From NCBI GenBank assembly GCA_002269645.1, contig NIVC01001793.1, positions 62,001 to 126,000 on the forward strand: a DNA stretch of 64,000 bases, in the 5' to 3' direction. The translations under genes and the position numbers were made by a program. The notes beneath the pieces were generated by a model. That model was given only the letters and a program-made list of their open reading frames with translations, had not been told where the DNA came from and did no database searches. Source of the stretch: Macrostomum lignano (Eukaryota). Of this stretch, positions 2,891 to 53,014 are shown piece by piece (positions within the stretch are counted from its first letter, which is position 1; every line of letters begins with the position of its first letter).

Positions 2891-3534
2891 CAGGCGCGTC
2901 GCCACTAGGGGGGGGGGACAATGGGGACATGTCCCCCCAGTAAAAGCTCTGGGGGGACATGCCAATGCTTTGTCTTCCCCACCCCACCTTGTGACTCGTG
3001 GTAATCAAAAATTTTTCTTCAGGGCGCCAAAATATAGCGCCTTTGGCGCCAAAATGAGTGCCTGCGGCGCTAAAAGGAATGCCTACGGCCATACATGCGC
3101 AACCTTGGGAATCACCCGGCCGTTTCTATTGGCAAAACATACATGTAAGTCGCTATTGGCTGAGAGCAGTCACGTGACTACCATTCCGTCCAATAGCGAC
3201 TTACATGTGTGTGTTGCCAATAGAAACAGCCGGATGAATCCCAAAGTTGCGCCCAAGCATGCCTACGGCGCCAAAATGAGTGCCTGCGGTGCTAAAATGA
3301 GTGCCTGCTGCGCTAAAAGGAATGCCTACGGCGCTAAAAGGAATGCCTACGGCGCCAATACGAGTGCCTGCGGCGCTAAAATGAGTGCCTGCGGTGCTAA
3401 ACTGAGTACCTGCGGCGACAAAATGAGCACTGACAACACGATTCTCACAAAAATGGAAATGTAGGAATTTAGTCATGAACATGTTGAATTCTTGGCTTTG
3501 TCCCCCGACCATAAAATCAATGGCGACGTCCCTG
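2891..3534. mobile_element. Non-autonomous hAT-type MITE with internal 21-bp repeats
   Basis: TIR CAGGCGCGTCGCCACT versus reverse complement of the right end CAGGGACGTCGCCATT; 8-bp TSD tagacagt (2883-2890) / tagtcagt (3535-3542), 7/8 match; internal repeats ggcgctaaaatgagtgcctgc. Confidence 0.8.
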
Positions 3535-4569: not shown

Positions 4570-7500
4570 AAGAAGCGTCATGTAATGAATCATAGAAGCG
4601 TCATGTAAAAAATCATAAAAGCGTCATGTAAAAAAATCGTAGAAGCGTCATATAAAAATCATAGAAGCGTCATGTAAACAATCATAGAAGCGTCATGTAA
4701 AAATCATAAAAGCGGCATGTAAACAATCATAGAAGCGTCATGTAAACAATCATAGAAGCGTCATGTAAACAATCATAGAAGCGTCATGTAATGAATCATA
4801 GAAGCGTCATCTAAAAATCATAGAAGCGTCATGTAAAAAATCATAAAAGCGTCATGTAAAAATCGTAGAAGCGTCATGTAAAAATCATAGAAGCGTCATG
4901 TAAAATCATAGAAGCGTCATGTAAAAATCATAGAAGCGTCATGTAAAATCGTAGAATCGTCCTGCCAAAATCGTAGAAGCGTCATGTAAAAAATCATAGA
5001 AGCGTCATGTAAAAATCATAGAAGCGTCATGTAAAATCATAGAATCATCCTGCCAAAATCGTAGAAGCGTCATGTAAAAAATCCTTGAAGCGTCATGTAA
5101 ACAATCATAGAAGCGTCATGAAACAATCATAGAAGCGTCATGTAAACAATCATAGAAGCGTCATGTAAACAATCCTAGAAGCGTTATGTAAACAATCCTA
5201 GAAGCGTCATGTAAACAATCATAGAAGCGTCATGTAAACAATCCTAGAAGCGTCATGTAAACAATCATAGAAGCGTCATGTAAACAATCATAGAAGCGTC
5301 ATATAAAAATCATAGAAGCATCATGTAAACAATCATAGAAGCGTCATATAAAAATCATAGAAGCGTTATGTAAAAATGATAGAAGCGTCATATAAAAAAT
5401 CATAGAAGGGTCATGTAAACAATCATAGAAGCGTCATATAAAAATCATAGAAGCGTCATGTAAACAGTCATAGAAGCGTCATGAAACAATCATAGAAGCG
5501 TCATGTAAACAATCATAGAAGCGTCATGTAAAAATCATAGAAGCGTCATGTAAAATCGTAGAATCGTCCTGCCAAAATCGTAGAAGCGTCATGTAAAAAA
5601 TCATAGAAGCGTCATGTAAAAATCATAGAAGCGTCATGTAAAATCATAGAATCATCCTGCCAAAATCGTAGAAGCGTCATGTAAAAAATCCTTGAAGCGT
5701 CATGTAAACAATCATAGAAGCGTCATGAAACAATCATAGAAGCGTCATGTAAACAATCATAGAAGCGTCATGTAAACAATCCTAGAAGCGTTATGTAAAC
5801 AATCCTAGAAGCGTCATGTAAACAATCATAGAAGCGTCATGTAAACAATCCTAGAAGCGTCATGTAAACAATCATAGAAGCGTCATGTAAACAATCATAG
5901 AAGCGCCATGTAAAAATCATAGAAGCATCATGTAAACAATCATAGAAGCGTCATATAAAAATCATAGAAGCGTTATGTAAAAATGATAGAAGCGTCATAT
6001 AAAAAATCATAGAAGGGTCATGTAAACAATCATAGAAGCGTCATATAAAAATCATAGAAGCGTCATGTAAACAGTCATAGAAGCGTCATGAAACAATCAT
6101 AGAAGCGTCATGTAAACAATCATAGAAGCGTCATGTAAACAATCATAGAAGCGTCATGTCAAAATCATAGAAGCGTCATGTAAACAATCATAGAAGCGTC
6201 ATGAAACAATCATAGAAGCGTCATGTAAACAATCATAGAAGCGCCATGTAAACAATCATAGAAGCGTCATGTAAAAATCATAGAAGCGTCATGTAAACAA
6301 TCATAGAAGCGTCATGAAACAATCATAGAAACGTCATGTAAAAATCATAGAAGCGTCATGTAAACAATCATAGAAGCGTCATGTAAACAATCATAGAAGC
6401 GTCATGTAAACAATCATAGAAGCGTCATGTAAACAATCATAGAAGCGCCATGTAAAAATCATAAAAGCGTCATGTAAACAATCATTCAAGCGTCATTTAA
6501 ACAATCATAGTAGCGTCATGTAAACAAGCATAGAAGAATGTAAACAATCATAGAAGCGTCATGTAAAAATCATAGAAGCGTCATGAAACAATCATAGAAG
6601 CGTCATGTAAAAAATCATAAAAGCGTCATGTAAAAATCGTAGAAGCGTCATGTAAAAATCATAGAAGCGTCATGTAAAATCATAGAAGCGTCATGTAAAA
6701 ATCATAGAAGCGTCATGTAAAATCGTAGAATCGTCCTGCCAAAATCGTAGAAGCGTCATGTAAAAAATCATAGAAGCGTCATGTAAAAATCATAGAAGCG
6801 TCATGTAAAATCATAGAATCATCCTGCCAAAATCGTAGAAGCGTCATGTAAAAAATCCTTGAAGCGTCATGTAAACAATCATAGAAGCGTCATGAAACAA
6901 TCATAGAAGCGTCATGTAAACAATCATAGAAGCGTCATGTAAACAATCCTAGAAGCGTTATGTAAACAATCCTAGAAGCGTCATGTAAACAATCATTCAA
7001 GCGTCATTTAAACAATCATAGAAGCGTCATGTAAACAAGCATAGAAGCGTCATGTAAAAATCATAGAAGCGTCATGTAAACAATCATAGAAGCGTCATGA
7101 AACAATCATAGAAACGTCATGTAAAAATCATAGAAGCGTCATGTAAACAATCCTAGAAGCGTCATGTAAACAATCATAGAAGCGTCATGTAAACAATCAT
7201 AGAAGCGACATGTAAAAATCATAGAAGCATCATGTAAACAATCATAGAAGCGTCATATAAAAATCATAGAAGCGTTATGTAAAAATGATAGAAGCGTCAT
7301 ATAAAAAATCATAGAAGGGTCATGTAAACAATCATAGAAGCGTCATATAAAAATCATAGAAGCGTCATGTAAACAATCATAGAAGCGTCATGAAACAATC
7401 ATAGAAGCGTCATGTAAACAATCATAGAAGCGCCATGTAAAAATCATAGAAGCGTCATGTAAACAATCATAGAAGCGTCATGTAAAAATCATAGAAGCGT

Positions 7501-8065: not shown

Positions 8066-8944
8066 ATCATGGTAGAATAAAAGAAGCGTCATGTCAGACA
8101 TGAAGGGTGTCATGTAAAAATAAATGCAGCTATAATGCTGTGCTGGGGAGAAAAACTGAGACGTTAAGGCTCTCGGAGAATAACTGAGATTACGGGGGGG
8201 GGGGGTTGCTGAGATGTCAAAGCAAAAGTCAGAAGCTACTTCAAAGTTCATGTACTTTACTCAATTTTTTTATTACATTCTTTGTTGGCTCGCCACGGGG
8301 GGGGGTCGCTGATAGAAGAAGAGTCATGTAAAAAATAAAAGTAGCACTATGTATACATAAAAGAAAAGTCATGTCGAAGTTAAAAGATTCATTTGGGAAT
8401 TGCTATGATGTCAAAGCTTGGAGGGAATCGTTACAGTGCTGTGATTCTTAAAGAAGGAATCACTAAAATGTCAAGGCTTAGGGGAGAAGAATTGCTGAGA
8501 TTCAAGGCTTTAGGTTGGGTTAAAGTTAGGTTTAGGTCAGGTGTGGGTTGAGGGTTATATTTTATCGGGTTTCAAGGTTAACGGGGGATTTTTAAGATTT
8601 CAAGGTTTATGGAGGCCATCGCTGACATGTCAAGGCTTACGGGGGAATAGCTGAGATGTCAAGGCTCACGGGGGTATAAATGAGATTTCAAAGCTAAAGT
8701 CAGAAGCTACATGTAAACAATCATGTAAAGTTTATTGAAAACTTTTTATTACATTTTTTGATGCCTCCTCAGGGGAGGGATCGCTGATAAAAAAAGCGTA
8801 ATGTAAAAAATAAAAGAAGCTTCATGTCGAAGTTAAGAGATTCATTTGGGAATCCCTACGATGTCGAGGCTTGCAGGAAATCGCTATAATGCTGTAGCAG
8901 TGCTATAATGACTCTTAGAGAGAATTACTGAAATGTCAATGCTT

Positions 8945-9010
8945 TAGGGTTAGGTTAGGGTTAGGGTTAGGGTTAGGGTTAGGGTTAGGGTTTGGCTAGG
9001 GTTAGGGTTA
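8945..9010 (+). repeat. Interstitial telomeric-type (TTAGGG)n tract
   Basis: ttagggttaggttagggttagggttagggttagggttagggttaggg; degenerate counterparts at ~8510-8555, 48364-48400 and 51455-51482 (as CCCTAA). Confidence 0.9.
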
Positions 9011-10120
9011 GAAGGTTGACAGATATTTTTAGATTTCCAAGGCTTATTGGGGGCATTGCTGAGATGTCAAGGGGGGGAGTTGATATGTTAAAGCTTGTGG
9101 TGGGGAATTACTGACATGTCAAGGCTTACAAGGTTTGACAGGAGATTTTTTAAGATTTCAAGGATACATGTAGCTTATTAAAAAAACGTGTAGCGATTGC
9201 ATTTCTTTGGCTCCCCAACGGGGGGCGTAGATTGCTAGTTGCTTATCTGAAAAATGCCTGTAGTCCCTACCCACCCCAATATTGGGATAGTCTCTATTTC
9301 AATTAGATTGGCTATGTGCATTTATTAATATTTACTCTGATTCAACTATATTAGTATTAGTTTGAATGCTAAAGCACTATAAAAATCTTGCCTTGAGAGT
9401 TTGGATTTTGTTTGCAATTTTAACAATTTCTAGTGTGCCACTGAACTTAGCTAAAAGAGTAGAGTAGTACAAAGCTTTTGAAAGCTATAGAAAACATTTT
9501 ATTTGCTGAGTGGGTTTGTCTTGGCTGCCTTTCTAGGCAGAGTATAATATCTATCTTTAATATCAAGAGTGAAAAATATGAGGACATATTTTAACTCAGT
9601 ATTAAAAAATCTTGAGATATCACTCACAAGTTCACCTTTTCACTAAGCCTCAATGACCAATGTCTCATTTTGTCTTGTTATTGTTATATAAAAAAGATTT
9701 ATTAGTTTGCTAGCTTAAAAACTTTTTTTCATGCTTTGGTCCTTAAGATAGCAGTCACTACTTTCATAAAAATGTCAAAATTAAAATCCTATAATCTAAA
9801 CAAGTTTAAAACAAGTATTGCCATTGAATAAAGACTAGTTTAAACATATTGTACATATAATAATAGACATTTAATGTTCTAAAGAAATTGGTAATAATAT
9901 AAAAAATAGGAAAAAAATGAATCATTTGAATTTCATTTAAGCTAAAAACCAATAGGTTTTCCATATGCATAGATACAATTTTTTTATTTGTTTACAAATT
10001 TATTAATTAGTAAAGGATGGACAAGCAGAAATTTTGGTCAGCATGAAAATTTTTGAAATTTTCAAAGTCAGGTATGATTGCGATTGTGAATATGAATTTA
10101 TATTAATATTAATAGTTATA

Positions 10121-11432
10121 CAAGGGTTGTGTCATAAATTTGCTGACAACTGCAAATATCAAAGAAACAAAACAAAGAACAGCTAATTGTCAACATTGCA
10201 CTTCTCAAAATAGTCACCCCCAAGCTGCACACATTTGTGCCATCTCTCTGGCAGCTTGCTGATGCCCTGGGCAAAGAATTCCGTGGGGGTCCCTTGTACC
10301 CACTGGCTGATGGCCGAGCTGAGTGCAGAAAGGCTTCCATAGCGATGGCCACGAAGGGGCTCTTTCATTTTAGGGAACAACAAGTAGTCACTAGGGGCCA
10401 GGTCAGGAGAATAGGCAGGGTGAGGCAGCAACTCGAAGCCTAGTCTCCTGATGACATCCATAGTTGCATTGCAGGTATGCGGCCTGGCGTTGTCCTGCTG
10501 CAGCACAGTGCCCCTGGTGATCCTTCCCCGGCACTCACTCTTGATCTTCTCACGCAGCTGTTCGAATATTTCACAGTAGTACTGGGCATTGATGGTTCTG
10601 CCTTCAGGTAGCCACTCGATCAGCAAGATGCCTTCTCTGTCCCAGAACACGGTGGCCATGCGCTTACCTGCTGACTGCACCGCCTTGGCCTTGACCGGTG
10701 GGGGTTCGTGAGTAGCCTTCCAGACGCTGCTCTGCTGTTTTGTTTCCGGTTTATAGAAGTGAAACCACGTTTCATCACCAGTCACCAGGCGGCCAAGAAA
10801 GTTGGGCTCGTTTTGATAGGTGTTGAGCAGGTGGCGGCACATCTGGACCCTCTCTTGCAGTTGGACAGGAGTCAGCAGTTTAGGGACCCATCGTGCAACA
10901 ACTCGTGTCATATGCAGATGGTTGGAGATGATGCGATGAATGCTCTTCATTGGTATCGCCAACAAGTCCTCTAACTGCCTCAGGGTTGCTCCATGATCAT
11001 CGTCCAGGGCATGCTGCACACGCTGGATGTTGTCACTGGAAGTGGATGACCGCGGTGCACCTGGGCAGGGAGCATCATCAACTGTCTCCTAGCCGTCCTC
11101 AAAGCGCTGCACCCACTTTGACACAGTTTGTTTCGAAGGTGCATCCTCACCAAAGATTTGCAGCAGCTCGCAGTAAATATCAGCCTGCTTCTTCTGCTGC
11201 TTCCACAATGACCAAATGACAGTGCACTTGGCAGCTTCACTTTTCTCCATACTGGCTAGAAGGGTGGTTTGAATGCCACTCGATTTCTGCCTTATCTCAA
11301 AAGCCAGAGGGAAGATTTTCCATAGACAATAAGATCGATGGTGCCTTAGTCTGTAACAAAAAATTCTGCCCCAAAGTACAAAAGAAACAGACGCTATGTA
11401 AGTTTGTCAGCGAATTTATGACACAACCCTCA
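10121..11432 (-). mobile_element. Mariner (DD34D) DNA transposon, full length, decayed
   Basis: TIRs TA|CAAGGGTTGTGTCATAAATTTGCTGACAA and TTGTCAGCGAATTTATGACACAACCCTCA; encloses a transposase. Confidence 0.95.
10183..11250 (-). pseudogene. Mariner transposase with one in-frame stop (codon 54, TAG at 11089-11091)
   Basis: ATG at 11250 (MEKSEAAKCTVIW...) is in frame with ORF 10183-11019; motifs WVPKLL, GDETW, QDNARPH, YSPDLAPSD; 34 residues between the second and third catalytic D. Confidence 0.93.
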
Positions 11433-16760: not shown

Positions 16761-19301
16761 AACCTGCGCGAAATCATACCACCGTAAAACACACTAAACT
16801 ATGCAGCAAGTTTTTAGCGTTGAAAAAAATAAAGCTAAAAGCGGAGTCGCGCTGAGTGTAACACAACAGCTGCTATAATTAGATTCAGTCCATACATGGT
16901 CCTCATGATGGGGTGACTACGAGCTAATTGTTAGTAGACTCATAAAATGCTCCGCCGTCTATCTTGTAAGCATGCGGCGGCAAGTTTTAAGCGTATAACA
17001 GAATTTTTTATGACTGAACAAATTAATCTGCGTAAATTGTTAATTTGTTTTAATTAAGTGGGCAGCAAATTGTAGGCAGTGGCCCCACCTCAAACTCATT
17101 GGTCACTTTGGGGGGCGCTGCATGGTGACTATTTTTATTATTTTTATTTTTATTAGACTAGATGCTATATAGATCTCGCAGTTTTGCCCTAGCCCGTTAG
17201 GGGCCAGCAAAAAAGATCGGTGCCAAGGCCCAACATTCCGGGCCATCATATTCCCCAGCCTCTAGCCAGCATCGCGCCATGAGTCGCTTAATTACCAACC
17301 GCAGATTCTACTGCCAAGCAGCTGCCGCCTCCGCCAGTGACGGCTCTCAAACATTGCCATCTGCCAAGCCGCACCTCGCAGTCTACAGCCACTGCCAGCG
17401 CTGACTGTATGGAGCCGTTGGTTAATTGTCAGTTAAATTGAGGGTCCGCCGCGCGTCACGAAACAAAACTGCCTCTCGGAATAGATGGAGATAGGAGAAG
17501 GGGGGAGACTGAGCGTCAATGAGGGAGGGGACACTCCAAAATAGACAGAACTGGACTCAAGTCACAATGGCCCGCAGAAAATGATGACGATAATCACACG
17601 GGAGGAGGGGTGCAGGGGGTTTGGAAGTCAGACCCTGGCCCAGTGATCATCATTCATTACCAGGCGAATGAAATATTCATTTGGCTGCTCCACCCCGCGC
17701 GCGGAGCCTGGATGATGGAGCTGGGGAAGGTAAGAAGCTGCCCCATTCCGAGATCCAACACTAACTAATTAATCGCGATGGACTGCTCTCCTGAGTCCCG
17801 GCCAAGCCAAACACAAAACGGAACTCTTGCACTGGAAGCTGTTTAGTGTTTTTCAGCTATCTCAACCCCTCTCTGCATCGCTGGTTCCCCATATTACCAA
17901 TTTTGTCACAATTTGATGAAGGAAAGAAGCCCCCCCTCCAACCACCCCCTCTGACAAGTGCGGCAAGTGTGCTCCCCGATAGTCGTCAAGAGGAGGTCGC
18001 ATGGCAACTATTATCTGTGGGAGAGGGAGGGTTGGCTACCTGGAGTGTGACTACAGCAGCCTGGTTGGCCCAGCTGGGACGCAGGCTTAGCGCCTCCCAG
18101 CAGTGCCGATTGGGTGCCGGACGAAGAGGGGCTGCGAGGTTGCTGCGGCGGCGATGGGGCAGCAGCGGCTGTCAGCATTTATGCTGGCACCGGGGCCCAG
18201 CGATGCGGGCACTTCGCCATCTCTTCTCTGTCTCGACCGGAGCATAGGCATCAAGGTTGACTGACAGCAACATTCTTGAATAGGACGCCTCCCAAACCGC
18301 CCTGAGCGTTGGTGTTTAAATTCTACCTGTCATACTTGACACAGGTGAGTTAAGAAAGTTGTTTATGCATTCTATGAGCTAATGCCTCTTTTGTCTATAT
18401 TTGTCTTTGTAGTTCCCTTAGCCTAAAAAGCGAGGATGCAACGCAGTCGTTATACAATAGGCTCTTGAGCAACTCTGAGTGGGGCGAGTGCATGGGCATG
18501 GCTAACTCAGCAGGGTAGCTGGCGCAGCATGCGACGTCCAGATGCGGAGTTGCTAAGCACAGAATAATGAGAGCGAAGAGGAAGACGCAGGAGTAAATGA
18601 AGTGGGAGGGGCCGGCAGAGAAGGGAAAACGAAAAGACAGCTTTGGGATTTGGATTTTTGCAAGCTTTTTTCCCATAAAAACAGGAGCTACCTTTCTACA
18701 CTATTTTTTTACACGATTGGGCTGCCACTCCTGCCAGGAAGGCTGTTGCCAAGGCTTGGAGCAGCTTCACCTTCTTTCTCTGAAGAGTAAAACCTCATGT
18801 ATGGATGAGAGTTATGTCATCGATGCTCCACAATAATCTACTGGATAAAATATTGCCAATTGTATTTGACACAGCACTGCGGAGCCAAAAGGAGGAGATC
18901 AATTCCAGCTGCGCAATCCGGGTCTAGGCTTGAACAGGGAGAGACTAAGCACACATTGGATTCAAGCCTATTGAATCCTAACTTACAATGTGTGACAGGT
19001 GGGCAAACATACGTCTAGAAAGGATTTAAGCCATTTTGCAAATGAGGGATCTTAAATAAAACATCAACAGCGACAATTAGACAGACGCCCAATCGGCCCC
19101 CTCTAGGATCAACGGAGCTTCAACCTGCAGACCTCATTTCCCTGTGTTTGTCCCTCTTGATTGTTCTCAATCGGATGAAAGGGCAATCCTGATGTAGCTA
19201 AGGAATTCCACAGCACACACCATTAGTGGGCAATCGTTCATTCCGACAATGTGAGGACAACAGGCGTCTTGGCGTCTGCTCAGAAGAATCTTTTCCGAGT
19301 A

Positions 19302-19309
19302 TATATAAA
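19302..19309 (+). promoter_or_regulatory. Candidate TATA box of the prohormone gene
   Basis: TATATAAA 76 nt upstream of ATG 19385; Inr-like TCAGTC at 19345-19350. Confidence 0.5.
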
Positions 19310-19384
19310 TTTCCAACGCTGGCCTCAACTCCATCTGCCAATTTTCAGTCGCAACGAAGGTCGAAGCTGAAACCGCGAGAAACT

Positions 19385-20173
19385 ATGAACTGCGCACTTC
19401 AAGTCTGCCTTCTACTTGGTCTTCTGGTGTCCGTCACCAGCGCGGAGGTAAGTTTGCAACTGATTTGCATTCTTTTCAGTTCCATTGTGTAGCAAACTTG
19501 AACCCTGAAAATGCAGAGGCCGCACCACGAGTACGGCGGAGAGTACCACGCCGCTAAACGGGCCGCCCTGGCCGACTTCCGCAAGCGCTTCAACGGCTGG
19601 TACAACGTCGACGCCGAGGAGCGAGGCCGCGCCGGCCATCACCACCGCCATGGCAAGGGCGAGCATGAGGAGAAGCGCGCCGCCCTGTCCGACTTTAAGC
19701 GCGCCGCTCTGTCCGACTTTAAGCGCGCCGCTCTGGCCGATTTCAAGCGCGCCTCGCTTGCCGACTTCAAGCGCGCCGCCTTAGCCGACTTCAAACGTGC
19801 CGCTCTGTCCGACTTCAAACGCGCTGCCCTAGCCGATTTCAAACGCGCCGCCCTAGCCGACTTCAAGCGCGCCGCTCTGGCCGACTTCAAGCGCTCGCAC
19901 CACCGCCACTCGGAGGGCCACAAAGGCGCCAAGGGCCACCATGTAAGCTGATTGAATGTTGCCTGCAGAACAACCTTGACAGTTGGAACTAGGACCAATA
20001 AAGAAACAGCATAACCTTATATTATGTATAATATTGAATAATTATTCGCTGCATGACCACTTCAGCACGCCGGCAAGCACCACGGCGAGCACAAACGGCA
20101 GCTGTACTGGGACATCTGCACCCGCATGGAGAACGGCGAGGAGAAGTACTACGCCTGCCAGAAGAGCCTCTAA
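19385..20173 (+). CDS. Secreted multi-copy peptide precursor (neuropeptide prohormone-like), 198 aa; exons 19385-19447, 19517-19942, 20066-20173
   Basis: Signal peptide MNCALQVCLLLGLLVSVTSAE. Introns GAG|GTAAGT..TGCAG and CAT|GTAAGC..TTCAG, both phase 0. Ten KR-flanked hexapeptides (AALADF x6, AALSDF x3, ASLADF x1), His-rich spacers, and C-terminal KR-QLYWDICTRMENGEEKYYACQKSL*. The repeats differ mainly at synonymous codon positions. Confidence 0.9.
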
Positions 20174-20630: not shown

Positions 20631-21935
20631 CGAGGGGCACTAGATAAGTTTCTAGCTGCGGTCAACATGTAACAGTTATAAAGATGAAACTTTCAGAGCT
20701 TTTCAAAGTACTCTCCATCAGCTTGGATGCACCGCCTCATCCGCTCAAACCAAGTTTCAAAGCAGTGGCGCCACTCTGAGTGGGATACCCCCTCAACGGC
20801 CGATCTATAGGCATCAACAGCCTCTTCGGCGGAGGAAAATCGGCACCCTCGCATGGAATTCTTGATGAATGGAAATAAAAAAAGTCACACGGTGCCAGGT
20901 CAGGTGAATATGGTGGATGACTGAGCTGCTGGAAGCCCACCGTCTGTAGAAACTCTCGAGTTCGATTCGCCGTGTGCGCACTGGCGTTGTCCTGGTGCAG
21001 CCAGAGACCTCGAACGCCGCACTTTGGCCGCGCCTCTTTAAGGCTGCTGATGACACGCGGCAGGCAGACGGTGCAGTACCAATCTGCAGTCACTGTGCGC
21101 TGGCTCTCGAGTGCTACAGTCGCAATGTGGCCAGTCTTTCGGAAGAAAGTTGCCACCATTTGCTTGCCAGTGCTCCGACCCCTGACAACCTTGGTCGGCG
21201 GGGCTTCATCTTCAAAAGCCCACACACGCGACTGGCATTTCCGCTCGGGTTCGTAGCAATACACCCACGTTTCGTCACATGTGACAATGTCTGTGACAGA
21301 CTTCGACGTCCCTCCGCCAAACCTGTCCAGCATTTCCTGGCACCAGCTCATGCGGGCCTGCTTCTGCTCGGTGGTGAGCAAATGCGGCACCCAGCGACTG
21401 GTCAGCTTGCGGACAGCGAGGTGATCACGAAGGATAAAAGCGACTGTCGGCGATGAGATTCCAAGACATGCCTCAATCGTTTGATACGTCACTCGCCGAT
21501 CAGCCTCAATCATGCGCCGCACGCGGTCGATGGTTTCAGGTGTCGTCACTGAAACAGGTCGGCCGGTTCGACCTTCGTCTTCCAAGCTGTCTCGGCCACG
21601 CTTGAACTCCCGGAACCAGGCGGTGACGGTGGCGATGGATGGCGCAAGGTTAGGAAAGGCAGCAGACAGCCGCTCGTGGCACTGGTGAAATGTCAAGCCG
21701 CTCTTAAAATCGTAGAAAATCATGGCACGAAAGTGTTCACGATTGAGCTCCATTACAGTGCTGAAAGAGTCACAGACCTTGTTGAGATAAAATGCGACAG
21801 TGAGAGAATGGTGACAATTAGGTGCATGAAACTTTGGGGACCATGATAAAACTTCTTATTCAATATGCTCAGAAAATATGGCCTAATTTGAATAAACGGT
21901 TTGACCGCAGCTAAAAACTTATCTAGTGCCCCTCG
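20631..21935 (-). mobile_element. Mariner (DD34D) DNA transposon, near-intact young copy
   Basis: 35-bp TIRs CGAGGGGCACTAGATAAGTTT(C/T)TAGCTGCGGTCAA with 1 mismatch; TA on both sides (20629-30, 21936-37). Confidence 0.97.
20693..21753 (-). pseudogene. Mariner transposase with a single 1-nt frameshift near the C-terminus
   Basis: MELNREHFRAMIFYDF...WVPHLL...CDETW...QDNASAH...YSPDLAPCD (D34D). Adding one base to the A7 run at 20877-20883 restores FFLFP...GEYFEKL* ending at TGA 20693-20695. Confidence 0.9.
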
Positions 21936-37857: not shown

Positions 37858-38975
37858 AACTGAAGATCTGGGAGGCTGGCCCCAGCAACTGAGGATCTGG
37901 GAGGCTGGCCCAGCAACTGAGGATCTGGGAGGCTGGCCCAGCAACTGAGGATCTGGGAGGCTGGCCCTAGCAAGTGAGGATCTGGGAGGCTGGCACAGTA
38001 ATTGAGGATCTGGGAGGCTGGCCCAGCAAGTGAGGATCTGGGAGGCTGGCCCAGTAACTGAGGATCTGGGAGGCTGGCCCAGTAATTGAGGATCTGGGAG
38101 GCTGGCCCAGTAACTGAGGATCTGAGAGGCTGGCCCAGTAATTGAGGATCTGGGAGGCTGGCCCAGTAACTGAGGATCTGAGAGGCTGGCCCAGTAACTG
38201 AGGATCTGAGAGGCTGGCCCTAGCAACTGAAGATCTGGGAGGCTGGCCCAGCAACTGAGAATCTGGGTAGCTGGCCCAGCAACTGAGGATCTGGGAGGCT
38301 GGCCCAGTAATTGAGGATCTGGGAGGCTGGCCTAGCAACTGAGGATCTGGGAGGCTGGCCCAGCAACTGAGGATCTGGGAGGCTGGCCCAGCAACTGAGG
38401 ATCTGGGAGGCTGGCCCAGCAACTGAGGATTTGGGTAGCTGGCCCAGCAACTGAGGATCTGGGAGGCTGGCCCAGTAATTGAGGATCTGGGAGGCTGGTC
38501 CAGCAAGTGAGGATCTGGGAGGCTGGCCCAGTAACTGAGGATCTGGGAGGCTGGCCCAGTAATTGAGGATCGGGGAGGTTGGCCCTAGCAACTGAGGATC
38601 TGGGAGTCTGGCCCAGTAATTGAGGATCTGGGAGGCTGGCCCAGCAAGTGAGGATCTGGGAGGCTGGCCCAGTAATTGAGGATCTGGGAGGCTGGCCCAG
38701 CAAGTGAGGATCTGGGAGGCTGGCCCAGTAACTGAGGATCTGGGAGGCTGGCCCAGTAATTGAGGATCGGGGTGGTTGGCCCTAGCAACTGAGGATCTGG
38801 GAGGCTGGCCCAGCAAGTGAGGATCTGGGAGGCTGGCCCAGCAAGTGAGGATCTGGGAGGCTGGCCCAGTAATTGAGGATCTGGGAGGCTGGCCCAGCAA
38901 CTGAGGATCGGGGAGGCTGGCCCAGCAACTGAGGATCGGGGAGGTTGGCCCAGCAACTGAGGATCTGGAAGGCTG
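37858..38975. repeat. 28-bp minisatellite (CTGAGGATCTGGGAGGCTGGCCCAGCAA) downstream of SLC25A42
   Basis: Tandem units; explains the overlapping minus-strand ORFs at 37822-39021. Confidence 0.95.
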
Positions 38976-39145
38976 GAGTAATTAAGTGAGCAAAGTTAGT
39001 GAGTAGACTGTTGTACAACACTCAACAAAACAGACATTTCACAAACAGACATAACACAACAAAACAGACAAGCCAATAACGGGATCAGTTTAGTGAGCAG
39101 TTCAAGCAAGCCAGGCTAGCAGAGGCAGCACGAAGCCAATGGCGC

Positions 39146-41016
39146 TCACTTGCCGCCTTGCTGGTCGCTAAACATTGGCGTTCTTCTCAGCAGCCACTGC
39201 ACCAGATCGAATGTTGCAAACGCGATGCCGTTAGCGATTGGCCCTTTGACGAAGTTCATTGACAAGCCTTTGTATAGGCCGTGCACTATGCCCTCGTGCT
39301 GGTAGGTGAGCCGCAGGCAGTGCCAGATGCCTTTGGTATACTCAGGATGGCCAGTCACCTGTTAATAGAAGGTATTATAATGCTAGAATAAGTCGGGAAG
39401 ACCACACTTGTGAATTCAGTTAAATGAGCTTAGCTGATTGGATCCATACAGCGGGTGAGGGGGCGGATCCATGCAGTGGGTAAGGGGGCGGATCCATGCA
39501 GCGGATAAGGGGGCGGATCCATGCAGTGGGAAAGGGGGCGGATCCATGCAGCGGATAAGGGGGCGGATCCATGCAGCGGGTGAGGGGGCGGATCCATGCA
39601 GTGGGAAAGGGGGCGGATCCATGCAGTGGGAAAGGGGGCGGATCCATGCAGTGGGTGAGGGGGCGGATCCATGCAGTGGGAAAGGGGACGAATGAGTAAA
39701 AAGCAGATCAGGGGGCGGATTCTTCTATTAGAGAAAGGGGGTTGTGTGCACCCCGGGGGTTGAAAGCGACATTGTCACACAACCGGCGAGAGGCATTACT
39801 ACCCATTCCGCCGACTCCCCTGAGCAGGCACACAAGCGCACGGATAGGACCGCAGTCATACGCACAGGCACACACTCACACAGGAGTGCACAGCGGCCCT
39901 AACTTTATTTTATCGTTAGGCATGTACACTTCACTGCGCCTTGGGGGTCTGGCCCTCAAGGGCGTTAATTGCACGAGCAGAGCCAAGCCGAGATTCCAAT
40001 TCAGTCCCAAATTAATGTGACTGTACTTGGAATCGAGCCTGGGCCCGGCACCACTGGGCTACGGCCCCACTGGAGTGGTGGATGGTGGTCAATTGCTGTG
40101 CGCGTCAGTAAAGAGCGGATCAGGGGGGGGGGGGGTGAAGTGTAGCAGACAAATCGCAGACAGAAATTCTCGCCTCCCCGATGCCCACCTGAGCGGTCTG
40201 CATCCGCCGCCGGACAATGTCCAACGGGTAGCTGCTAGTCTGGCCGAACAGGCCGGCCACTCCGCCGAACACGAACCTGGGCAGGGTGCCGGGGTCCTGT
40301 CCGGTCTGCCGTCTGTACCGCCGTTTCAAAGTCTCGTAGGTGTAAAACGAGGTGCCAGCGTAGGGCAGGGAGCCGGCTAAGGCCGGTGAGAAGCCGCGAT
40401 AGAGCGCCAGAGCGCCCTCTTGGCGCCAGATGCAGCGCAGAGCGTGGCCCAGATTCCTATAAGTATTAGACTTGGTGACCGCCATGCGAGCCCTGGCCAT
40501 GTCCAGCGGGTAGGTGCAGGTGACGGAGGTCACACCGGCCAGGCTACCGGACACGAACCGGCGCCAGTGGGCGGACTCAAATCGACCGCCGTCGACGTGG
40601 AGCAGCCGTTTATACTGCTCGTGAGAGGCGAACTGAACAGACGAATAGGGCACAATCCTGGCCAGGGTGGCTGTGTTGCCGCGCCACAATCTCAGCAGGC
40701 CTTCGCTTCTGTACGAGTCGCGCAGGAAGGCCAGACAGGCGCGCAAATTAAACCGGGTCTCGTGCGTCTGGAACCAGATCTTTGTCCGGTCTAGCGGCGC
40801 TATGGTGGTCTTGGCCGTGGCCCCGGCCACCGCGCCGGCCAGGAAGGAGGAAGTGAAAGCGCGAGAATGACTCAGGCCGCTAGATGTACCGGCCGATGAC
40901 GAGGAGGCTGGGGCGGGCGGATTGCTGGTGTCGGCGCCGGTCAGTGCGACGGCGCTAGCAGCGGGAGCGCCGCCGCCGGCTGCTGACGGGCCGGAAAAGG
41001 CCACAGACTCTGTCAT
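39146..41016 (-). CDS. SLC25A42: Mitochondrial coenzyme A transporter (SLC25 family), 346 aa; exons 41016-40189 and 39358-39146
   Basis: Three carrier signatures (PLDRTK, PLDMAR, PLDIVR); [25 protein letters not shown]; [21 protein letters not shown]. Phase-0 intron CAG|GTGGGC...TTAACAG|GTG gives QTAQ|VTGHP. Confidence 0.93.
39440..39690. repeat. 25-bp GGGGCGGATC-containing minisatellite in the SLC25A42 intron
   Basis: Unit GGGGGCGGATCCATGCAGTGGGAAA. Confidence 0.93.
39721..40068 (-). mobile_element. tRNA-derived SINE (head with internal deletion) in the SLC25A42 intron
   Basis: Minus strand GGGGCCGTAGCCCAGTGGT...GGCTCGATTCC; body collinear with 58791-59290; ends ctctaata. Confidence 0.75.
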
Positions 41017-43615: not shown

Positions 43616-44516
43616 TTAGAGACGAATATTCTGCGATCTTAAGATGATATTAAATGACGGTACCCAACACGGTAAAAGATTGGTTTTTTAAAGCTAAAAA
43701 AGTAGCTCTATTCGAATCTTCATAATGTTAAATGATCAAACGAGGAAAAGAAAGAGCAGGGCACCCGCCTAAGCATGCCTAAATATCTAGTAGAACAATG
43801 TACAGATTATCTTGTTCCCTCGCCATATACTAACTCTCTCTCACCGGCTAATCCCTAAAGTGGTTTATAAACAATGCATCAAGTGCCAGTATTACTATAC
43901 AAACAAGTTTACAAGACAGGGATATGAAAAGTTTATTCCAATACAACATAGGAAAATAGTTACTAACCAAGAATGATAGAAAAAAAGATTCTTGAAAAAA
44001 AAATTTGTTTAAATCTTTTCAGCTGTCAGAAGCAAAAATTCAAATTGGAGTACAATTAATGAACAGTGTTAGGCCTGGGAAGGTGCTGGCTGGACTCAAA
44101 TTGGAAAACCTGCACGGGCACGCAAAAGTGAGTGGAAATAGAGAAAGAAAAGGAGACAGGGCAGATCCAGCAAGCAGGTAAACAGCATAGATAACAGGGC
44201 GCACTCAGATAATAAAAGTATGTGCTGACTAGGGCTTGAATTTATTTAGCCAACACAGGCTTTTATTTGGCTTTGGTAAAGCTCCTCAAGTCTTTAGCGA
44301 CTAGCTATTCTCGGTCAGGTCAGGGGTATACAGTGTCATAATCTTCACCTTTAAAGTATGTCTTATTATATTTTCTAAGGACCCAATATACCACACCCGC
44401 GGTCACCATCATCGAACCGTTGTACACCCTGTGTGAGCGTCTGGTGAACAGGCCAATAGAGAATATCGTTGGGAAGGGGGTTCAGTTAAACGCTCTTCAA
44501 GACTTAAGTGAGATTC

Positions 44517-47194
44517 TCAACTGCTATTGCTGGTCGGGCTGTCGCTATTGTTGTCGGACTCAACGGCGGAGGCTTCGGCAACTGGCCGGAGGGCGTCCAG
44601 CTCCGAGTACAAGAAGCTGCGCAGCCGTTCTAGGTACTGAGGAAACATTTCAATATCGTTGTGGCCAGCGCCCACAACCCACAGCGGGTCCACTGGCTTT
44701 GGCAAGCGTTCGTAGATTGTCAGGCCGTGAGCGAAGTCAATCACTTCATCGTCTGTGCCGTGGATCACTAGGCAGGGCGACTGGATCCGAGGCGCCTTCT
44801 CGATGCTGCTCAAATGGTTATTGTTATAGCGGCTGGGTTGCAGACAGCGGGCACAGGTGGTCAGAGTTAGGTTCGTTCACCATGTCTAATCACTGCTCAT
44901 TCACCATGTCTAATCACTGCTCATTCACCATGTCTAATCACTGCTCATTCACCATGTCTGATCACTGCTCATTCACCATGTCTGATCACTGCTCATTCAC
45001 CATGTCTAATCACTGCTCATTCACCATGTCTGATCACTGCTCATTCACCATGTCTAATCACTGCTCATTCACCATGTCTAATCACTGCTCATTCACCATG
45101 TCTGATCACTGCTCATTCACCATGTCTAATCACTGCTCATTCACCATGTCTAATCACTGCTCATTCACCATGTCTGATCACTGCTCATTCACCATGTCTA
45201 ATCACTGCTCATTCATCATGTCTGATCACTGCTCATTCACCATGTCTAATCACTGCTCATTCACCATGTCTAATCACTGCTCATTCATCATGTCTGATCA
45301 CTGCTCATTCACCATGTCTAATCACTGCTCATTCACCATGTCTAATCACTGCTCATTCATCATGTCTAATCACTGCTCATTCACAATTTTCACTTCAATC
45401 ACTTCTCATTCACTATTTACAATCCGGTCACTGCTCACTCGCAATGATCAATCACACTGCTCACTCGCAATGATCAATCAAACTGCTCACTCGCAATGAT
45501 CAATCACACTGCTCACTCACAATGATCAATCACACTGCTCACTCACAATGATCAATCACACTGCTCACTCACAATGATCAATCACACTGCTCAATCACAA
45601 TGATTAATCACACTGCTCACTCACAATGATCAATCACACTGCTCACTCACAATGATCAATCACACTGCTCACTCACAATGATCAATCACACTGCTTACTC
45701 ACAATGATCAATCACACTGCTCACTCACAATGATCAATCACATTGCTCACTCACAATGATCAATCACACTGCTCACTCGCAATGATCAATCACACTGCTC
45801 ACTCGCAATGATAAAACCAGACTGCTCACTCACAATGATCAATCACACTGCTCACTCGCAATGATCAATCAAACTGCTCACTCGCAATGATCAATCACAC
45901 TGCTCACTCACAATGATCAATCACACTGCTCACTCACAATGATCAAATCACACTGCTCACTCACAATCAGCCACTCACTTAGGAAACGGATCGAAGAACC
46001 AGGTTCGCTGAGTCTCTGGAAAGGCAACCCGCATGCCGGACATTAGCGGGCTGTGCAATATAACTCCGGCCACTTTATACCGGGCAGCCAAGTCAACAGT
46101 TGGCACAGTGCCAATGGACTGGCCGTACAATATAATACTCTCGGGCTGCAGTTTGTACCGGGTGAGCAGCTGGTTCCAGGCGCACTCCATATCGGCGTAC
46201 AGATTCTTTTCCAGCGGCCGGCCAGTGCTGGCGCCGTAGCCGGAATAATCGTAGCCGAACACATTGACATTGAGCCGACGGCCCAAGCCAATAAAGAAGC
46301 TGCTCATCTGGCCCAGATCGACTGCGTTGCCGTGTGAGAATAGCAGGGTGAATCGGGAGCGAGGATTCACTTTGGCCATCATGCAGGCGATGTTGTTGCC
46401 GCGAGCGGTCGGGGCCAGGAATACCTGCGTTGTGTTCAGTCATGGGTGAGGGCAACAGTAGTACAGCATGCACTTTAGGCGTTGCTATTTAAAATTTGTT
46501 AGACACGATCAATAAAGCTATCTGTCAGACAGTAAAAATACCTGTTAGACAATAAAGCTACCTGTTAGATAATAAAGCTACCTGTCAGACAATAAAGCTA
46601 CCTGTTAGTTAGACAATAAAGCTACCTGTTAGACAATAAAGCTACCTGTTAGATAATAAAGCTACCTGTCAGACAATAAAGCTACCTGTTAGTTAGACAA
46701 TAAAGCTACCTGTTAGACAATAAAGCTACCTGTTAGACAATAAAGCTACCTGTTAGACAATAAAGCTACCTGTTAGACAATAAAGCTACCTGTTAGACAA
46801 TAAAGCTACCTGTTAGACCATAAAGCTACCTGTTAGACAATAAAGCTACCTGTCAGACAATAAAGCTACCTGTCAGACAATAAAGCTACTTGTTAGACAA
46901 TAAAGCTACCTGTTAGACAATAAAGCTACCTGTTAGACCATAAAGCTACCTGTTAGACCATAAAGCTACCTGTTAGATAGCTCAGCAAAACGAGCCGCTC
47001 ACCTCTAGGCTAGCCTTATCAGGATCGCTAAACTGAAACTCAGCCCGTTCGCTGAGGTGCAGCCGCAGGTCAGGCGAGTCGCCGTCAGCAATAATTGAAT
47101 AGGTGGGCTCCGGCGGCAGGAAGGCCAGCTTAGCCGCGATGCGGGAAGGCAGCGGAGGCCAGCAGAACAGGCGGAACAGATCGGCGCAAGACAT
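44517..47194 (-). CDS. ABHD17: ABHD17-family protein depalmitoylase (alpha/beta hydrolase), 308 aa; exons 47194-47003, 46424-45979, 44805-44517
   Basis: [15 protein letters not shown]; [13 protein letters not shown]; nucleophile YGQSIG; [10 protein letters not shown]; GAGHNDIE (S-D-H triad). GT-AG introns in phases 0 and 2 (AA|C = Asn). ATG at 47194; the ORF track start is TTG. The A/B/C paralog cannot be resolved. Confidence 0.96.
44876..45965. repeat. Two adjacent related minisatellites (24-bp then 26-bp) filling ABHD17 intron 2
   Basis: CATGTCTAATCACTGCTCATTCAC (44876-45385) and AATGATCAATCACACTGCTCACTCAC (45425-45965); explains ORF 44420-45499. Confidence 0.95.
46508..46980. repeat. 20-bp minisatellite (CAATAAAGCTACCTGTTAGA) filling ABHD17 intron 1
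   Basis: Tandem units visible. Confidence 0.95.
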
Positions 47195-47399
47195 GACAAC
47201 AAATTCTGGCGGCAAGTCGAAATTGGGAAAACTGCGCCCAACTGATATTTTTTAAATTTTAAATGCCGGTTATTAGTGAACGCACAGGAACGCTCGGGGT
47301 CTCTGACTAACTGACGCTGACCGCCAGGTGCAAGGAGCGAAGATCGAACTGTAATAATTTTAGACAGGCGGGATGTCAACAGATTAAACTTATTAAGAT

Positions 47400-47924
47400 C
47401 ATAGGCGTACGAACGTTTTAAAAAGTGGGGGGGGGGCAGGTTCAGTGACGGATTTAGGGGGGGGGGGGGCAGGTTCAGTGACGGATTTAGGGGGGGGGGC
47501 GCACAAGGCGCACGTCCTTGTCGAGTTAGATTTTTTTATATGGAAAATGCACATTATCATGTACCGATTATTTTCAGAATCCATCTTGTCAGCACTCATT
47601 TGATAAAGCGCCGTAGGCACTCATTTTAGCGCCGCAGGCACCCATTTTTGCACCGCCGGCACTCATTTTAGCACCGCCGGCACTCATTTTAGCTCCACAG
47701 GCACTCATTTTAGCGCCACAGGCACGCATTTTAGCGCCGCAGGCACTAAAATGTTTTGTCGCCCTGCAGCAAAATGCATTCATGCAAAGCAGCAAAAACC
47801 AAAAATAAGCAAGAAGTCTACATTTTACATTTAAAATGTGGAGGGGAGATACCATTACTGGCCCCCCATTTTAAAAAGTGGGGGGCCATGGCCCCACTGC
47901 CCCCCCCCCGTTCCTACGCCTATG
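47400..47924. mobile_element. Non-autonomous hAT-type MITE upstream of ABHD17
   Basis: TIR CATAGGCGTACGAACG versus CATAGGCGTAGGAACG; 8-bp TSD attaagat (47392-47399) / attaatat (47925-47932); internal 21-bp repeats are the reverse complement of those in 2891-3534. Confidence 0.82.
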
Positions 47925-48907
47925 ATTAATATTATCCTTCTAGCTGAATGCAACATAGTTTTCCACGCAAATGTGACATACATGATTGGATGCCTAATAT
48001 GAGAAATGTTGAAAAAAACAAAGAAAAATTATTTTTGGTTCTTCACAAGGTCATTTTGTTCTTCTAATATACTTTAATGATGATATTATTAAAAATAATA
48101 TATATCCAAGTGTTGGGTTTCAACCTTTTGGTTTCCAAAGAATAGGAATGTATCTAAACATCAATAGGGCCCTATGCTTATATTGAAGAATATTAGGTAT
48201 ATAACTAGCAACCAGCGCCCCCCTGTTGGGGAGCCCAGCAGTCCCTTGTAAGCCTTGACATGTCAGCAATTCCCCTCCACAAGCCTTAACATATCAACTT
48301 CCCCCTTGACATCTCAGCGATGCCCCCCATAAGCCTTGAAATCTTAAAAAATCTGTCAACCTTCTAACCCTAACCCTAGCTCTAACCCTTACCCTAAAGC
48401 ATTGACATTTCAGTAATTCTCACCAAGAGTCATTATAGCACTACAGCATTATAGCGATTCCCTGCAAGCCTCGACATCGTAGGGATTCCCAAATGAATCT
48501 CTCAACTTCGACATGACGCTTCTTTTATTTTTACATGACGCTTTTTCTATAAACGACCCCCGTGAGGGGCCAACAAATATTAATGTAAAAAAGTTTTGAA
48601 TAAACTACATGTAGCTTCTGACTTTAGCCTTGACATCTCAGTTATTCCCCCATGAGCCTTGACATCTCAGCTATTCCCCGTAAGCTTTGACATCAATAGT
48701 ATTCGCCCCAAGATTCACAGCACACAGTTTCATGTGAAGTTTTTTACATGACACTTCTTTTATGTCTGACATGACACTTCTTTTATGTCTGACATGACGC
48801 TTCTTTTGTCAAGGCTTTATTATACTTTTGAATAAACTACATATTTAAACTACAGCTTCTCTTTGCAATAACCTCAACAATCCCTTGTGAGTCTTGACAC
48901 CTCAGCT

Positions 48908-51350: not shown

Positions 51351-53014
51351 AGCTATTCCCCTCGCAAGTCTTGACATCTCAGCAATGCCCCCCATAAACC
51401 TTGCAATCTGAAAAATCCCCTGTCAACCTTGAAAACTAAACTGTAACCTGAAACCCAAACCTGATATAAACCTAACCCTAAAGCCATGACATATTAGCAA
51501 TTCTTCTCCCCTAAGCCTTGACATTTTAGTGATTCCTCCCCAAGAATCACAGCACTATAGCAATTCCCTCCAAGCCTTGACATTGTAGCAATTCCCAAAT
51601 GAATCTTTTAACTTCGAAATGACTCTTATTTTATGTCTACATAATGCTTCTTTTCTTTTTTACATTACACTTCTTCTATCAGCGCCCACCCCCTATGGTG
51701 AGCCAACAAAGAATGTAAAAAAAATTAAGTAAACTGCATTTAGCTTCTGACTTTTGCCTTGACATCTCAGAAATCCATATGAATATTAATAGTCCACTTT
51801 GAAACAAATGATAGTTACTACAATAATATTTTTTTGATATGCTACAAAAGAGAAATATAAAAGAACTATTAGGAAAGACAGACAAGACATAAATTGCTAA
51901 AATATATACTTGCACACTTTAACAAAAATTGAATTTGATCTATGTTTAATCGATCTATTATAATTATTAGGTGGGCCAGATACTAAGGAACACTTTGGGA
52001 TTGCATGTATAAAATTAAAAATATTTTTAATACAATTTACAAAACTTATATTGGCATATAAATAGTACCTTTAACTTTTAAGACCCTTTTTAGATTGTAT
52101 ATTATATTAGAATTGAAATGCATATCATCTAAATCATTAATTTTTATATTTACATGTTGTAATTGCAATTTTATGGCTTTTTGAGTGATTTTTGAAAAAG
52201 AAAGATTTTTTGAGTAGATTTAAACAACTTTCAAGCTTTAATTTAAACAAAAAATGCTATAAAACCTATATATATAATATAGGAGATGATGCTATAAATG
52301 GCCATTAGTGTGGACAATGTTTAGTGCAGATAGGCCCCTAGTAGTACAGGCAGAGTCTAGCTCTAGCACACTAGCACAATCTGGTATAGGAAAGGGGATG
52401 TCTAGCACAATTCAGACCTTGGCTGCAATAAAGCTTATGATTTGTGGAAAAATCAATTAGATTTTTTTAAAAGGTAATTTAGACCAATATTGACTTAGTA
52501 AGCTAGCATTGCATTATAAATTGCAGAACCTTATGGGAGAATATTTTATTTTATCTGCTTATTAAGCTCCTTTTCAATAAAGCACAAATGATTCCCATGG
52601 AAATATGTAGCTCCTCTCCTAAGTATAATATGAGCAACAATATGCCATTTATAATGTTCTTTGAACTATATGAACCATGGTATATAGTCTTAGTACTTCT
52701 AAATATACTTTAAATACTAAAGGGAATTTAGACTTGGCAACCACTTAGTGGTCTACTAAAGGCAATGAGTGAAATAAATGGACTATATTTATACTGAACT
52801 ATATAAGAAGCTGAAATACAAGGAGTGTCCAAAAAGTATTGATATTTTTGCTCATATTGCTTTATTGCAAGCTTGAAAATCAATGAATTTGGTATCATTG
52901 GATAGAAAAAAAGTATTAGCTTCAATATGTTAAAAAAATCATCCTCATGTTGTTTTTTAAAGTTATCACTGTCTTTTTGAGCCAGGATAGCCTAGGCCTA
53001 TAGACTTACAAAAC

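Follow-up and report, generated by a model that had tools for sequence, protein, structure and literature searches.

What does a short, repeat-bearing locus in the genome of the flatworm Macrostomum lignano encode, and does its product belong to a peptide family that has already been described? The locus lies at positions 19385-20173, on the forward strand, of a 64,000-nucleotide (nt) stretch of DNA analysed as a whole and referred to here as the window (positions 62,001 to 126,000 of contig NIVC01001793.1, assembly GCA_002269645.1). A first-pass annotation, made from the letters of the window, had described it as a prohormone for ten hexapeptides of no recognised family. The analysis favours a functional three-exon preproprotein gene with bioactive hexapeptides, and, most likely, a flatworm member of the AxxxDF proneuropeptide family of spiralians, a reading that we consider probable though well short of settled.

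The gene model, as read from the sequence, encodes 198 amino acids (aa) across three exons on the plus strand, separated by two GT-AG introns. Its features, including those of the 5' leader and of the encoded peptides (KR, Lys-Arg), are the following:

about 19300-19310, plus strand: putative TATA-like element TATATATAAA, 75-85 nt 5' of the ATG, from reading of the sequence and a pattern scan
19341-19347, plus strand: acceptor-like TTTTCAG in the 5' leader, where the public model A0A1I8IA06 attaches an upstream exon
19385-19447, plus strand: exon 1, with the ATG at 19385 and the signal peptide MNCALQVCLLLGLLVSVTSA↓E (21 aa), followed by the phase-0 donor GTAAGT
19448-19516, plus strand: intron 1, 69 nt, GTAAGT...CAG, phase 0, GC 0.38, after aa 21; junction also in A0A1I8IA06
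19517-19942, plus strand: exon 2, aa 22-163, with the N-terminal spacer, an isolated AALADF, a His-rich spacer, nine tandem units and the first part of the second His-rich spacer
19556-19588, plus strand: isolated first copy, KR-AALADF-RKR, aa 35-45, from reading of the sequence
19673-19894, plus strand: tandem block of nine 24-nt units, aa 74-147, from Tandem Repeats Finder (TRF), a unit table, the ratio of non-synonymous to synonymous differences (pN/pS 0.08) and a codon-phase control
19943-20065, plus strand: intron 2, 123 nt, GTAAGC...CAG, phase 0, GC 0.36, after aa 163; junction also in A0A1I8IA06
20066-20173, plus strand: exon 3, aa 164-198 and TAA, with the end of the His-rich spacer, KR and a Cys-containing C-terminal peptide
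20099-20170, plus strand: predicted C-terminal peptide QLYWDICTRMENGEEKYYACQKSL, 24 residues, aa 175-198, preceded by KR, with two Cys and an NG turn

The exons were called by two independent annotation pipelines, both splice junctions are present in the independent public model A0A1I8IA06 (UniProt), and the GC content is 0.56-0.67 in the exons versus 0.36-0.38 in the introns. The N-terminal segment MNCALQVCLLLGLLVSVTSA↓E, judged by inspection, comprises a 14-residue hydrophobic core with the small residues T/A at -3/-1. The signal peptide, the two phase-0 introns and the TATA box that the first-pass annotation had reported are all recovered in this model, both introns being of the GT-AG type and the TATA-like element standing upstream of the ATG. 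Within the 5' leader, the translated leader SQRRSKLKPRET of A0A1I8IA06 is identical to the window sequence at the TTTTCAG acceptor, which may operate as a cis- or trans-splice acceptor, with a use in spliced-leader (SL) trans-splicing as a conjectural option. No Pfam domain was detected in the window protein, in its paralogue or in the precursor from the nemertean Lineus longissimus, both of which are considered below.

The precursor contains ten hexapeptides, including (i) six copies of AALADF, (ii) three copies of AALSDF, and (iii) one copy of ASLADF, each with KR in front and KR behind, the first copy alone being followed by RKR. None of the ten is followed by a C-terminal Gly, leaving free, non-amidated C-termini, and the peptide list given at first pass, with its KR flanks and missing Gly, matches the gene exactly. 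The tandem block, detected by TRF as a 24-nt array of 9.2 copies (19673-19894), runs KR-AALSDF twice, AALADF, ASLADF, AALADF, AALSDF and AALADF three times, ending in a closing KR, and the spacers between and after the copies are rich in His. The predicted masses are 606.301 Da for AALADF and 622.296 Da for AALSDF and ASLADF.

Tandem arrays are numerous in the window (more than 25, period 12-110 nt), and the hexapeptide array varies in a manner unlike most of them. Relative to the unit consensus, 21 of the 25 differences are synonymous versus an expectation of 26% (binomial p=3e-9, the units not being fully independent), pairwise comparison among the ten units gives a synonymous difference (pS) of 0.52 and a non-synonymous difference (pN) of 0.039, and the mismatches of the array fall at codon positions 1/2/3 in the numbers 5/0/18 (p=1e-5). 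The codon-phase control comprised nine other minisatellites of the window with a period divisible by 3: seven are unbiased (p = 0.10-0.84), and the two biased arrays show a weaker bias that is otherwise distributed across the phases. The first-pass annotation had pointed to mostly synonymous variation, unlike the minisatellites nearby, as a mark of selection on the protein; the pattern holds, and the proposed selection is supported by both the pN/pS of the units and the comparison of the repeat block between paralogues.

That comparison rests on a second M. lignano gene. A word-indexed protein search returned three matches only, all from M. lignano and named 'hypothetical' or 'conserved secreted protein', which carry 8-11 copies of AALADF/AALSDF and one A-S-L variant, His-rich spacers and a shared C-terminal motif (YWDxC...NG...YxC). 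The paralogue, BOX15_Mlig019341g1 / Mlig008925g1 / UniProt A0A1I8G648, resides at a locus (L001) syntenic with the window, with a 28-nt minisatellite and then an alpha/beta-hydrolase gene in equal order. It comprises 11 copies of AALADF/AALSDF/ASLSDF, lacks the isolated first copy, and has the same exon structure, with three exons and phase-0 introns after aa 22 and aa 195.

The two proteins are 54-56% identical overall, the spacers being essentially unalignable. The differences are distributed very unevenly, with (i) pN 0.031 at pS 0.59 in the repeat block, (ii) pN 0.49-0.56 in the spacers (pS about 0.6; pN/pS about 0.6-0.9), and (iii) pN 0.38 in the signal peptide. Since synonymous divergence is saturated (pS about 0.6), the duplication is old; despite this saturation, the hexapeptides of both paralogues display not a single D/E, L/I/V or F/Y exchange, and the order and identity of KR are fixed at 20 of the 21 junctions over both proteins, the exception being RR in front of the first copy of the paralogue. 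Because pN is low in the repeat block while the spacers and the signal peptide have diverged, the hexapeptides and the KR sites are the selected part of the protein, and by this comparison they are by far its most constrained part, as in precursors of bioactive peptides. The prohormone architecture proposed at first pass is thereby well supported by sequence and evolution, that is, by the peptide inventory, the KR flanks and the constrained peptides set against divergent spacers. The upstream DNA of the two paralogues could not be aligned and revealed no common regulatory motif, and the TATA-like TATATATAAA is not found in the 200 nt upstream of the paralogue.

In the window, the 28-nt minisatellite (about 40 copies) occupies 37858-38976 and strongly matches L001:13627-14321 at the corresponding position; either conserved synteny or membership of a dispersed repeat family could account for the match. 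The exons of the alpha/beta-hydrolase, syntenic with the paralogous locus, lie at about 44500-47250 on the minus strand.

The public record of the window gene is distorted. An exhaustive search of 1.84 billion representative proteins with a HMMER profile of the Macrostomum proteins retrieved residues 1-190 of the window protein, exactly, within M. lignano A0A1I8IA06, a 900-aa 'Inhibitor_I29 domain-containing protein'. This entry is a chimera stitched over 30 kb of the window (17307-47252), some pieces of which are antisense to real genes, and it holds the three exons of the window gene as far as an internal pseudo-donor in exon 3. This chimera is the only entry with the window gene in the protein collections searched, and the paralogue is annotated as a stand-alone protein. 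A literature text search for Mlig019341, Mlig008925, A0A1I8IA06 and A0A1I8G648 produced no mention.

To which family could such a precursor belong? The first-pass annotation placed the motif in no named family, a statement that has to be withdrawn: A[AS]L[AS]DF fits the AxxxDF proneuropeptide family ('common motif AxxxDF'; 'ASWLDF') of nemerteans and brachiopods in length, KR flanks, non-amidation and gene layout (Thiel et al. 2021, PMC8557429). That study (Thiel, Yanez-Guerra, Franz-Wachtel, Hejnol, Jekely; Mol Biol Evol 38:4847; supplements bioRxiv 10.1101/2021.03.03.433790) reports multi-copy, KR-flanked, non-amidated hexapeptides, including ASWLDF, ASWLDM, ASWIDT and ATWHDF in nemerteans and AKFNDF, AKFVDF and AKFFDF in brachiopods (PMC8557429 supplement), and describes the family as a lineage-specific innovation that shows no clear resemblance to other neuropeptides; its species sampling includes no flatworm (PMC8557429). 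All ten copies of the window precursor and all 11 of the paralogue fit the AxxxDF motif.

The HMMER search further recovered the Lineus longissimus AxxxDF precursor XP_064647831.1 (P0033; E=4.9e-11), which comprises a signal peptide and KR-ASWLDF-KR repeats. Its gene (L002) has exons at 3001-3087 / 5380-6015 / 6284-6367, and its two introns, both phase 0, follow aa 29 and aa 241. The window gene, its paralogue and the Lineus gene, the one non-flatworm gene compared, thus all carry one phase-0 intron behind the signal-peptide exon and another behind the repeat exon. Gene structure is the criterion that Thiel et al. apply to precursor homology, and in this respect the Macrostomum and Lineus genes agree. 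Taken together, the shared features are a signal peptide, a multi-copy hexapeptide with A1, D5 and F6, a hydrophobic residue at position 3, a free C-terminus, KR on both sides, and three coding exons with phase-0 introns at equivalent places.

In contrast, positions 2-4 read A/S-L-A/S in Macrostomum, S-W-L in nemerteans and K-F-N in brachiopods; most of the Lineus copies are parted by acidic spacers, whereas those of Macrostomum stand mostly back to back; and the nemertean C-terminal region ALGSWIEAKQ...IKVIREMLL has no counterpart in Macrostomum. Homology of the Macrostomum gene with the AxxxDF family is probable but not proven, resting on motif and architecture. The M. lignano gene probably represents the first flatworm member of the family, present as two old paralogues. 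The first-pass idea of an undescribed signalling system accordingly loses most of its novelty to the AxxxDF match and retains part of it: the family is already known from nemerteans and brachiopods, and we did not find it reported in flatworms. It is probably not a wholly new signalling system.

Four further precursors of the same architecture were encountered among sequence collections. P0030 and P0053 (L003, a contig of SRR22388065) comprise a signal peptide and five to six KR-ASWADM-KR copies, and P0046 (ERZ27297709) and P0089, from metagenome contigs of the European Nucleotide Archive (ENA), carry KR-xxLNDF-KR copies. Their sequences suggest further members of an AxxxD[F/M] type.

Other known peptide systems resemble the window precursor less closely. 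Achatin-like precursors also release short acidic, non-amidated peptides in multiple copies from dibasic sites; unlike the hexapeptides, peptides of the achatin type have four residues (GFFD/GFAD), one of them a D-amino acid. A full-text literature search for AALADF, AALSDF and ASLADF yielded only chance matches, one in an unrelated paper and the other in the Aplysia ALNP peptide SYADSKDEESNAALSDFA, which contains AALSDF inside a longer linker peptide rather than as a repeated unit, most likely by coincidence. The WLD precursor of the annelid Platynereis dumerilii, likewise spiralian, carries multi-copy non-amidated acidic peptides between dibasic sites and Cys-containing non-repeat regions; its peptides have been detected by mass spectrometry and reported to influence the beating of larval cilia (Conzelmann et al. 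2011 and 2013, PMC3890597). They differ in their length of 10-11 residues (WLDNSQFKDED), KK flanks and lack of an A1/D5/F6 register, and a relation of WLD to the ASWLDF-type peptides may be entertained as a lead only.

How would the hexapeptides be produced? The cleavage sites of the window precursor read D-F-K-R↓A, with a residue other than Arg at P4. Dibasic sites of the prohormone convertases PC1 and PC2 fit without an Arg at P4, whereas the furin consensus is R-x-[KR]-R; because the P4 Arg of furin is absent, the sites look PC1/PC2-type and would belong to the regulated secretory pathway. The proposed sequence of events comprises (i) removal of the signal peptide; (ii) passage through the regulated secretory pathway, where a PC2/PC1-type prohormone convertase would cut after each Lys-Arg; (iii) trimming of the basic residues by a carboxypeptidase E-type enzyme; (iv) release of ten acidic, non-amidated hexapeptides (6 AALADF, 3 AALSDF, 1 ASLADF); and (v) release of the His-rich spacer peptides and of the 24-residue C-terminal peptide, the latter probably as a disulfide-closed hairpin. 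The bioactive products under selection would be the hexapeptides, which most likely serve as neuropeptides or peptide hormones via a receptor; for Macrostomum we infer processing, neuronal expression and receptor signalling alike from the sequence. A PC2 homologue of M. lignano is expressed in the nervous system, and worms treated with double-stranded RNA against it failed to develop and were dead within two weeks (Arbore et al. 2015, PMC4490696). In Lineus, tandem mass spectrometry detected the KR-bounded spacer peptides GNTGDLKPWLEN, ALGSWIEAKQT and GNDNPMDPETIKVI (Thiel et al. 2021, PMC8557429), so that KR cleavage of the Lineus precursor is shown by published mass spectrometry.

The C-terminal tail QLYWDICTRMENGEEKYYACQKSL, on which the first-pass annotation was silent, deserves separate consideration, as its pattern YWDxC-x4-NG-x-E-x2-YxCxK is kept in the tail of the paralogue. 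The AlphaFold2 model of the window protein is of low confidence overall, with a predicted local distance difference test (pLDDT) score of 57 and a predicted template modelling (pTM) score of 0.22, no confident globular fold and disordered spacers. Its best-scoring part is a beta hairpin at residues 176-197 (pLDDT 73-80), centred on the conserved Asn-Gly. The C-terminal peptide is probably a small disulfide-stabilised hairpin, the disulfide being suggested by the model and the two Cys, and it may constitute a second bioactive product.

Several points weigh against membership in the AxxxDF family or against a neuropeptide role. The Macrostomum peptides have three of six positions in common with AxxxDF (A1, D5, F6), and position 3, Leu in Macrostomum, is Trp or Phe in most of the peptides of nemerteans and brachiopods. 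Outside the repeats the Macrostomum proteins showed no similarity to those of other phyla; spacers rich in His and a Cys hairpin tail are specific to Macrostomum. An hhalign comparison with AxxxDF gave 96.4% probability (E=1e-9), but an unrelated KR-octad repeat (P0038) scores equally and a second one (P0093) reaches 85%. The phyletic pattern is patchy, the family not appearing in the Schmidtea and Schistosoma catalogues searched and being reported missing in annelids and molluscs. The Lineus mass-spectrometric matches seen are spacer peptides, without hexapeptides among them, and the family literature examined reports no neuronal expression of AxxxDF. The window locus itself is supported at the level of sequence only. 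Moreover, an antisense open reading frame (ORF) with units KSARAARL runs through the array (19639-19998, minus strand), is open and has its wobble positions in common with the sense frame.

Two of these points call for comment. Because an unrelated KR-octad repeat gives the same hhalign values, similarity scores are not evidence of homology here, and hhalign was dropped as such. As the sense and antisense frames share their wobble positions, codon-position arguments alone are insufficient against the antisense frame. Antisense coding through the array was nevertheless rejected: the frame begins at TTG, with no ATG, signal peptide or splice context, and its pN/pS is higher than that of the sense frame (0.15 vs 0.08 over the array).

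The scope of the searches behind the phyletic pattern is as follows. LADF, LSDF, DFKR, ADFK and SDFK do not occur in the Schmidtea prohormones of Collins et al. 2010 (text and 8 supplements), nor do DFKR, DFKK, DFRR and DFRK in the S. mansoni compilation PMC9495596 (text and 10 supplements). No catalogue listing the family for flatworms was found, McVeigh et al. 2009 and Koziol et al. 2016 lying outside the search, and no further flatworm homologue was found among the 1.84 billion representative proteins. A six-unit KR-AxxxDF profile drawn from the window gene, its paralogue, nemertean, brachiopod and other sequences, with some rows pieced together from non-adjacent units, gave no match at E<=0.001 in a word-indexed collection of 5.8 billion proteins; this result is uninformative, as the Macrostomum proteins themselves were among those missed.

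Much of this evidence speaks for the best-surviving alternative, namely a genuine processed multi-copy precursor that is an invention of Macrostomum, its likeness to AxxxDF being convergent and limited to three residues and a generic prohormone architecture. The profile-profile score matched by an unrelated repeat, the lack of similarity beyond the repeats, the unique spacers and tail, and the want of another flatworm homologue in the representative proteins or in the catalogues searched are all in its favour, and peptide precursors in general often place a small residue after KR and end their peptides in Phe. The gene would then represent a system of the Macrostomum lineage itself, in which a duplicated precursor co-releases acidic hexapeptides, a disulfide-hairpin peptide and His-rich, metal-binding spacers, with a role that is possibly non-neuronal (e.g. 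pheromonal, reproductive or adhesive-release). Set against convergence, length 6, A1, D5, F6, the hydrophobic position 3, the free C-terminus and the KR flanks all coincide with AxxxDF, and so do both intron positions and phases with the Lineus gene; a three-position match to one of about 70 spiralian families would arise by chance in roughly 1% of cases, a random-sequence estimate and not a computed value. On balance we regard convergence as unlikely, though of real weight.

A second alternative, somewhat less likely again, accepts a secreted and processed precursor but assigns it outside the nervous system, as a gland product (pheromone, seminal-fluid or adhesive-release factor) or a defence precursor, the defence variant having cationic His-rich spacers (histatin-like, metal-binding) act alongside or instead of the hexapeptides. 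It draws on the His-rich composition, kept in both paralogues though the spacer sequence is not, on the neuronal tie of the gene, which is inferred only, and on the fast evolution of the spacers (pN/pS about 0.6-0.9), a trait of many Macrostomum secreted proteins of reproduction or defence; multi-copy KR-processed precursors also serve pheromones and antimicrobial peptides elsewhere. However, constraint sits on the hexapeptides and KR sites rather than on the His-rich parts, sites lacking the furin P4 Arg need convertases of the regulated pathway, and the closest described relatives are catalogued as proneuropeptides.

It is improbable that the product is an uncleaved secreted repeat protein of structural or matrix function, whose AALADFKR octads would make up one long amphipathic helix and whose His-rich segments would bind metal. 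AlphaFold2 does draw residues 68-150 as one continuous helix (pLDDT 60-76), and other invertebrates do possess secreted structural proteins rich in His. Nevertheless, the confidence of the model is so low (pLDDT 57, pTM 0.22) that it does not discriminate between a cleaved precursor and a helical repeat protein, and a period of 8 residues puts the hydrophobic face of the helix out of register. The invariance of KR (20/21 junctions) and the lack of conservative exchanges are tighter than expected for a helical scaffold, and the equivalent KR sites are cleaved in Lineus. Finally, the notion of no gene at all but a GC-rich 24-nt minisatellite open in one frame by chance, for which the more than 25 arrays of the window, in a genome packed with minisatellites, and the open antisense frame might be invoked, is effectively refuted by the concentration of differences at codon position 3 (pN/pS 0.08), the ATG, signal peptide, two in-phase GT-AG introns and exon/intron GC contrast, the old syntenic paralogue with identical peptides and exon structure, and the exons called by two independent pipelines.

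The surroundings of the gene include several mobile and repetitive elements. Mariner/Mos1-type transposase ORFs (HTH_48, Transposase_1, DDE_3) are located at 20737-21753 and 10183-11019, both on the minus strand; the length of the 3' untranslated region of the peptide gene is limited by the former, which starts about 560 nt past the stop codon. An uninterrupted mitochondrial-carrier ORF with three Mito_carr repeats occupies 40120-41016 (minus strand), RNase H/integrase fragments of a long terminal repeat (LTR) retroelement occupy 49290-50802 (plus strand), and about 12 copies of TTAGGG form an interstitial telomere-like array at 8944-9011. In addition, two inverted matches of about 350-450 nt (83-86% identity) connect 8209-8976 with 48364-51770, and reverse-complementary minisatellite units pair 3260-3427 with 47607-47747 and 8595-8695 with 48626-48694, which together suggest two inverted copies of one repeat-bearing element.

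For the annotation of M. lignano, the finding means that the public model of the window locus, the chimeric 900-aa protein, is wrong. Surveys relying on amidation motifs or on a peptidomics minimum of 7 residues would miss hexapeptides of this kind. If the assignment is true, the orphan AxxxDF family would be older and wider than described, extending from nemerteans and brachiopods to flatworms and dating at least to the common spiralian ancestor of the three groups, and its apparent absence from annelids, molluscs, planarians and parasitic flatworms would reflect either loss or a failure to recognise it. Transgenesis is also possible in M. lignano. With RNA interference established in this species (Arbore et al. 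2015, PMC4490696), the worm would offer a tractable animal in which to find out where the orphan AxxxDF peptides are expressed, which receptor they act on and what they do.

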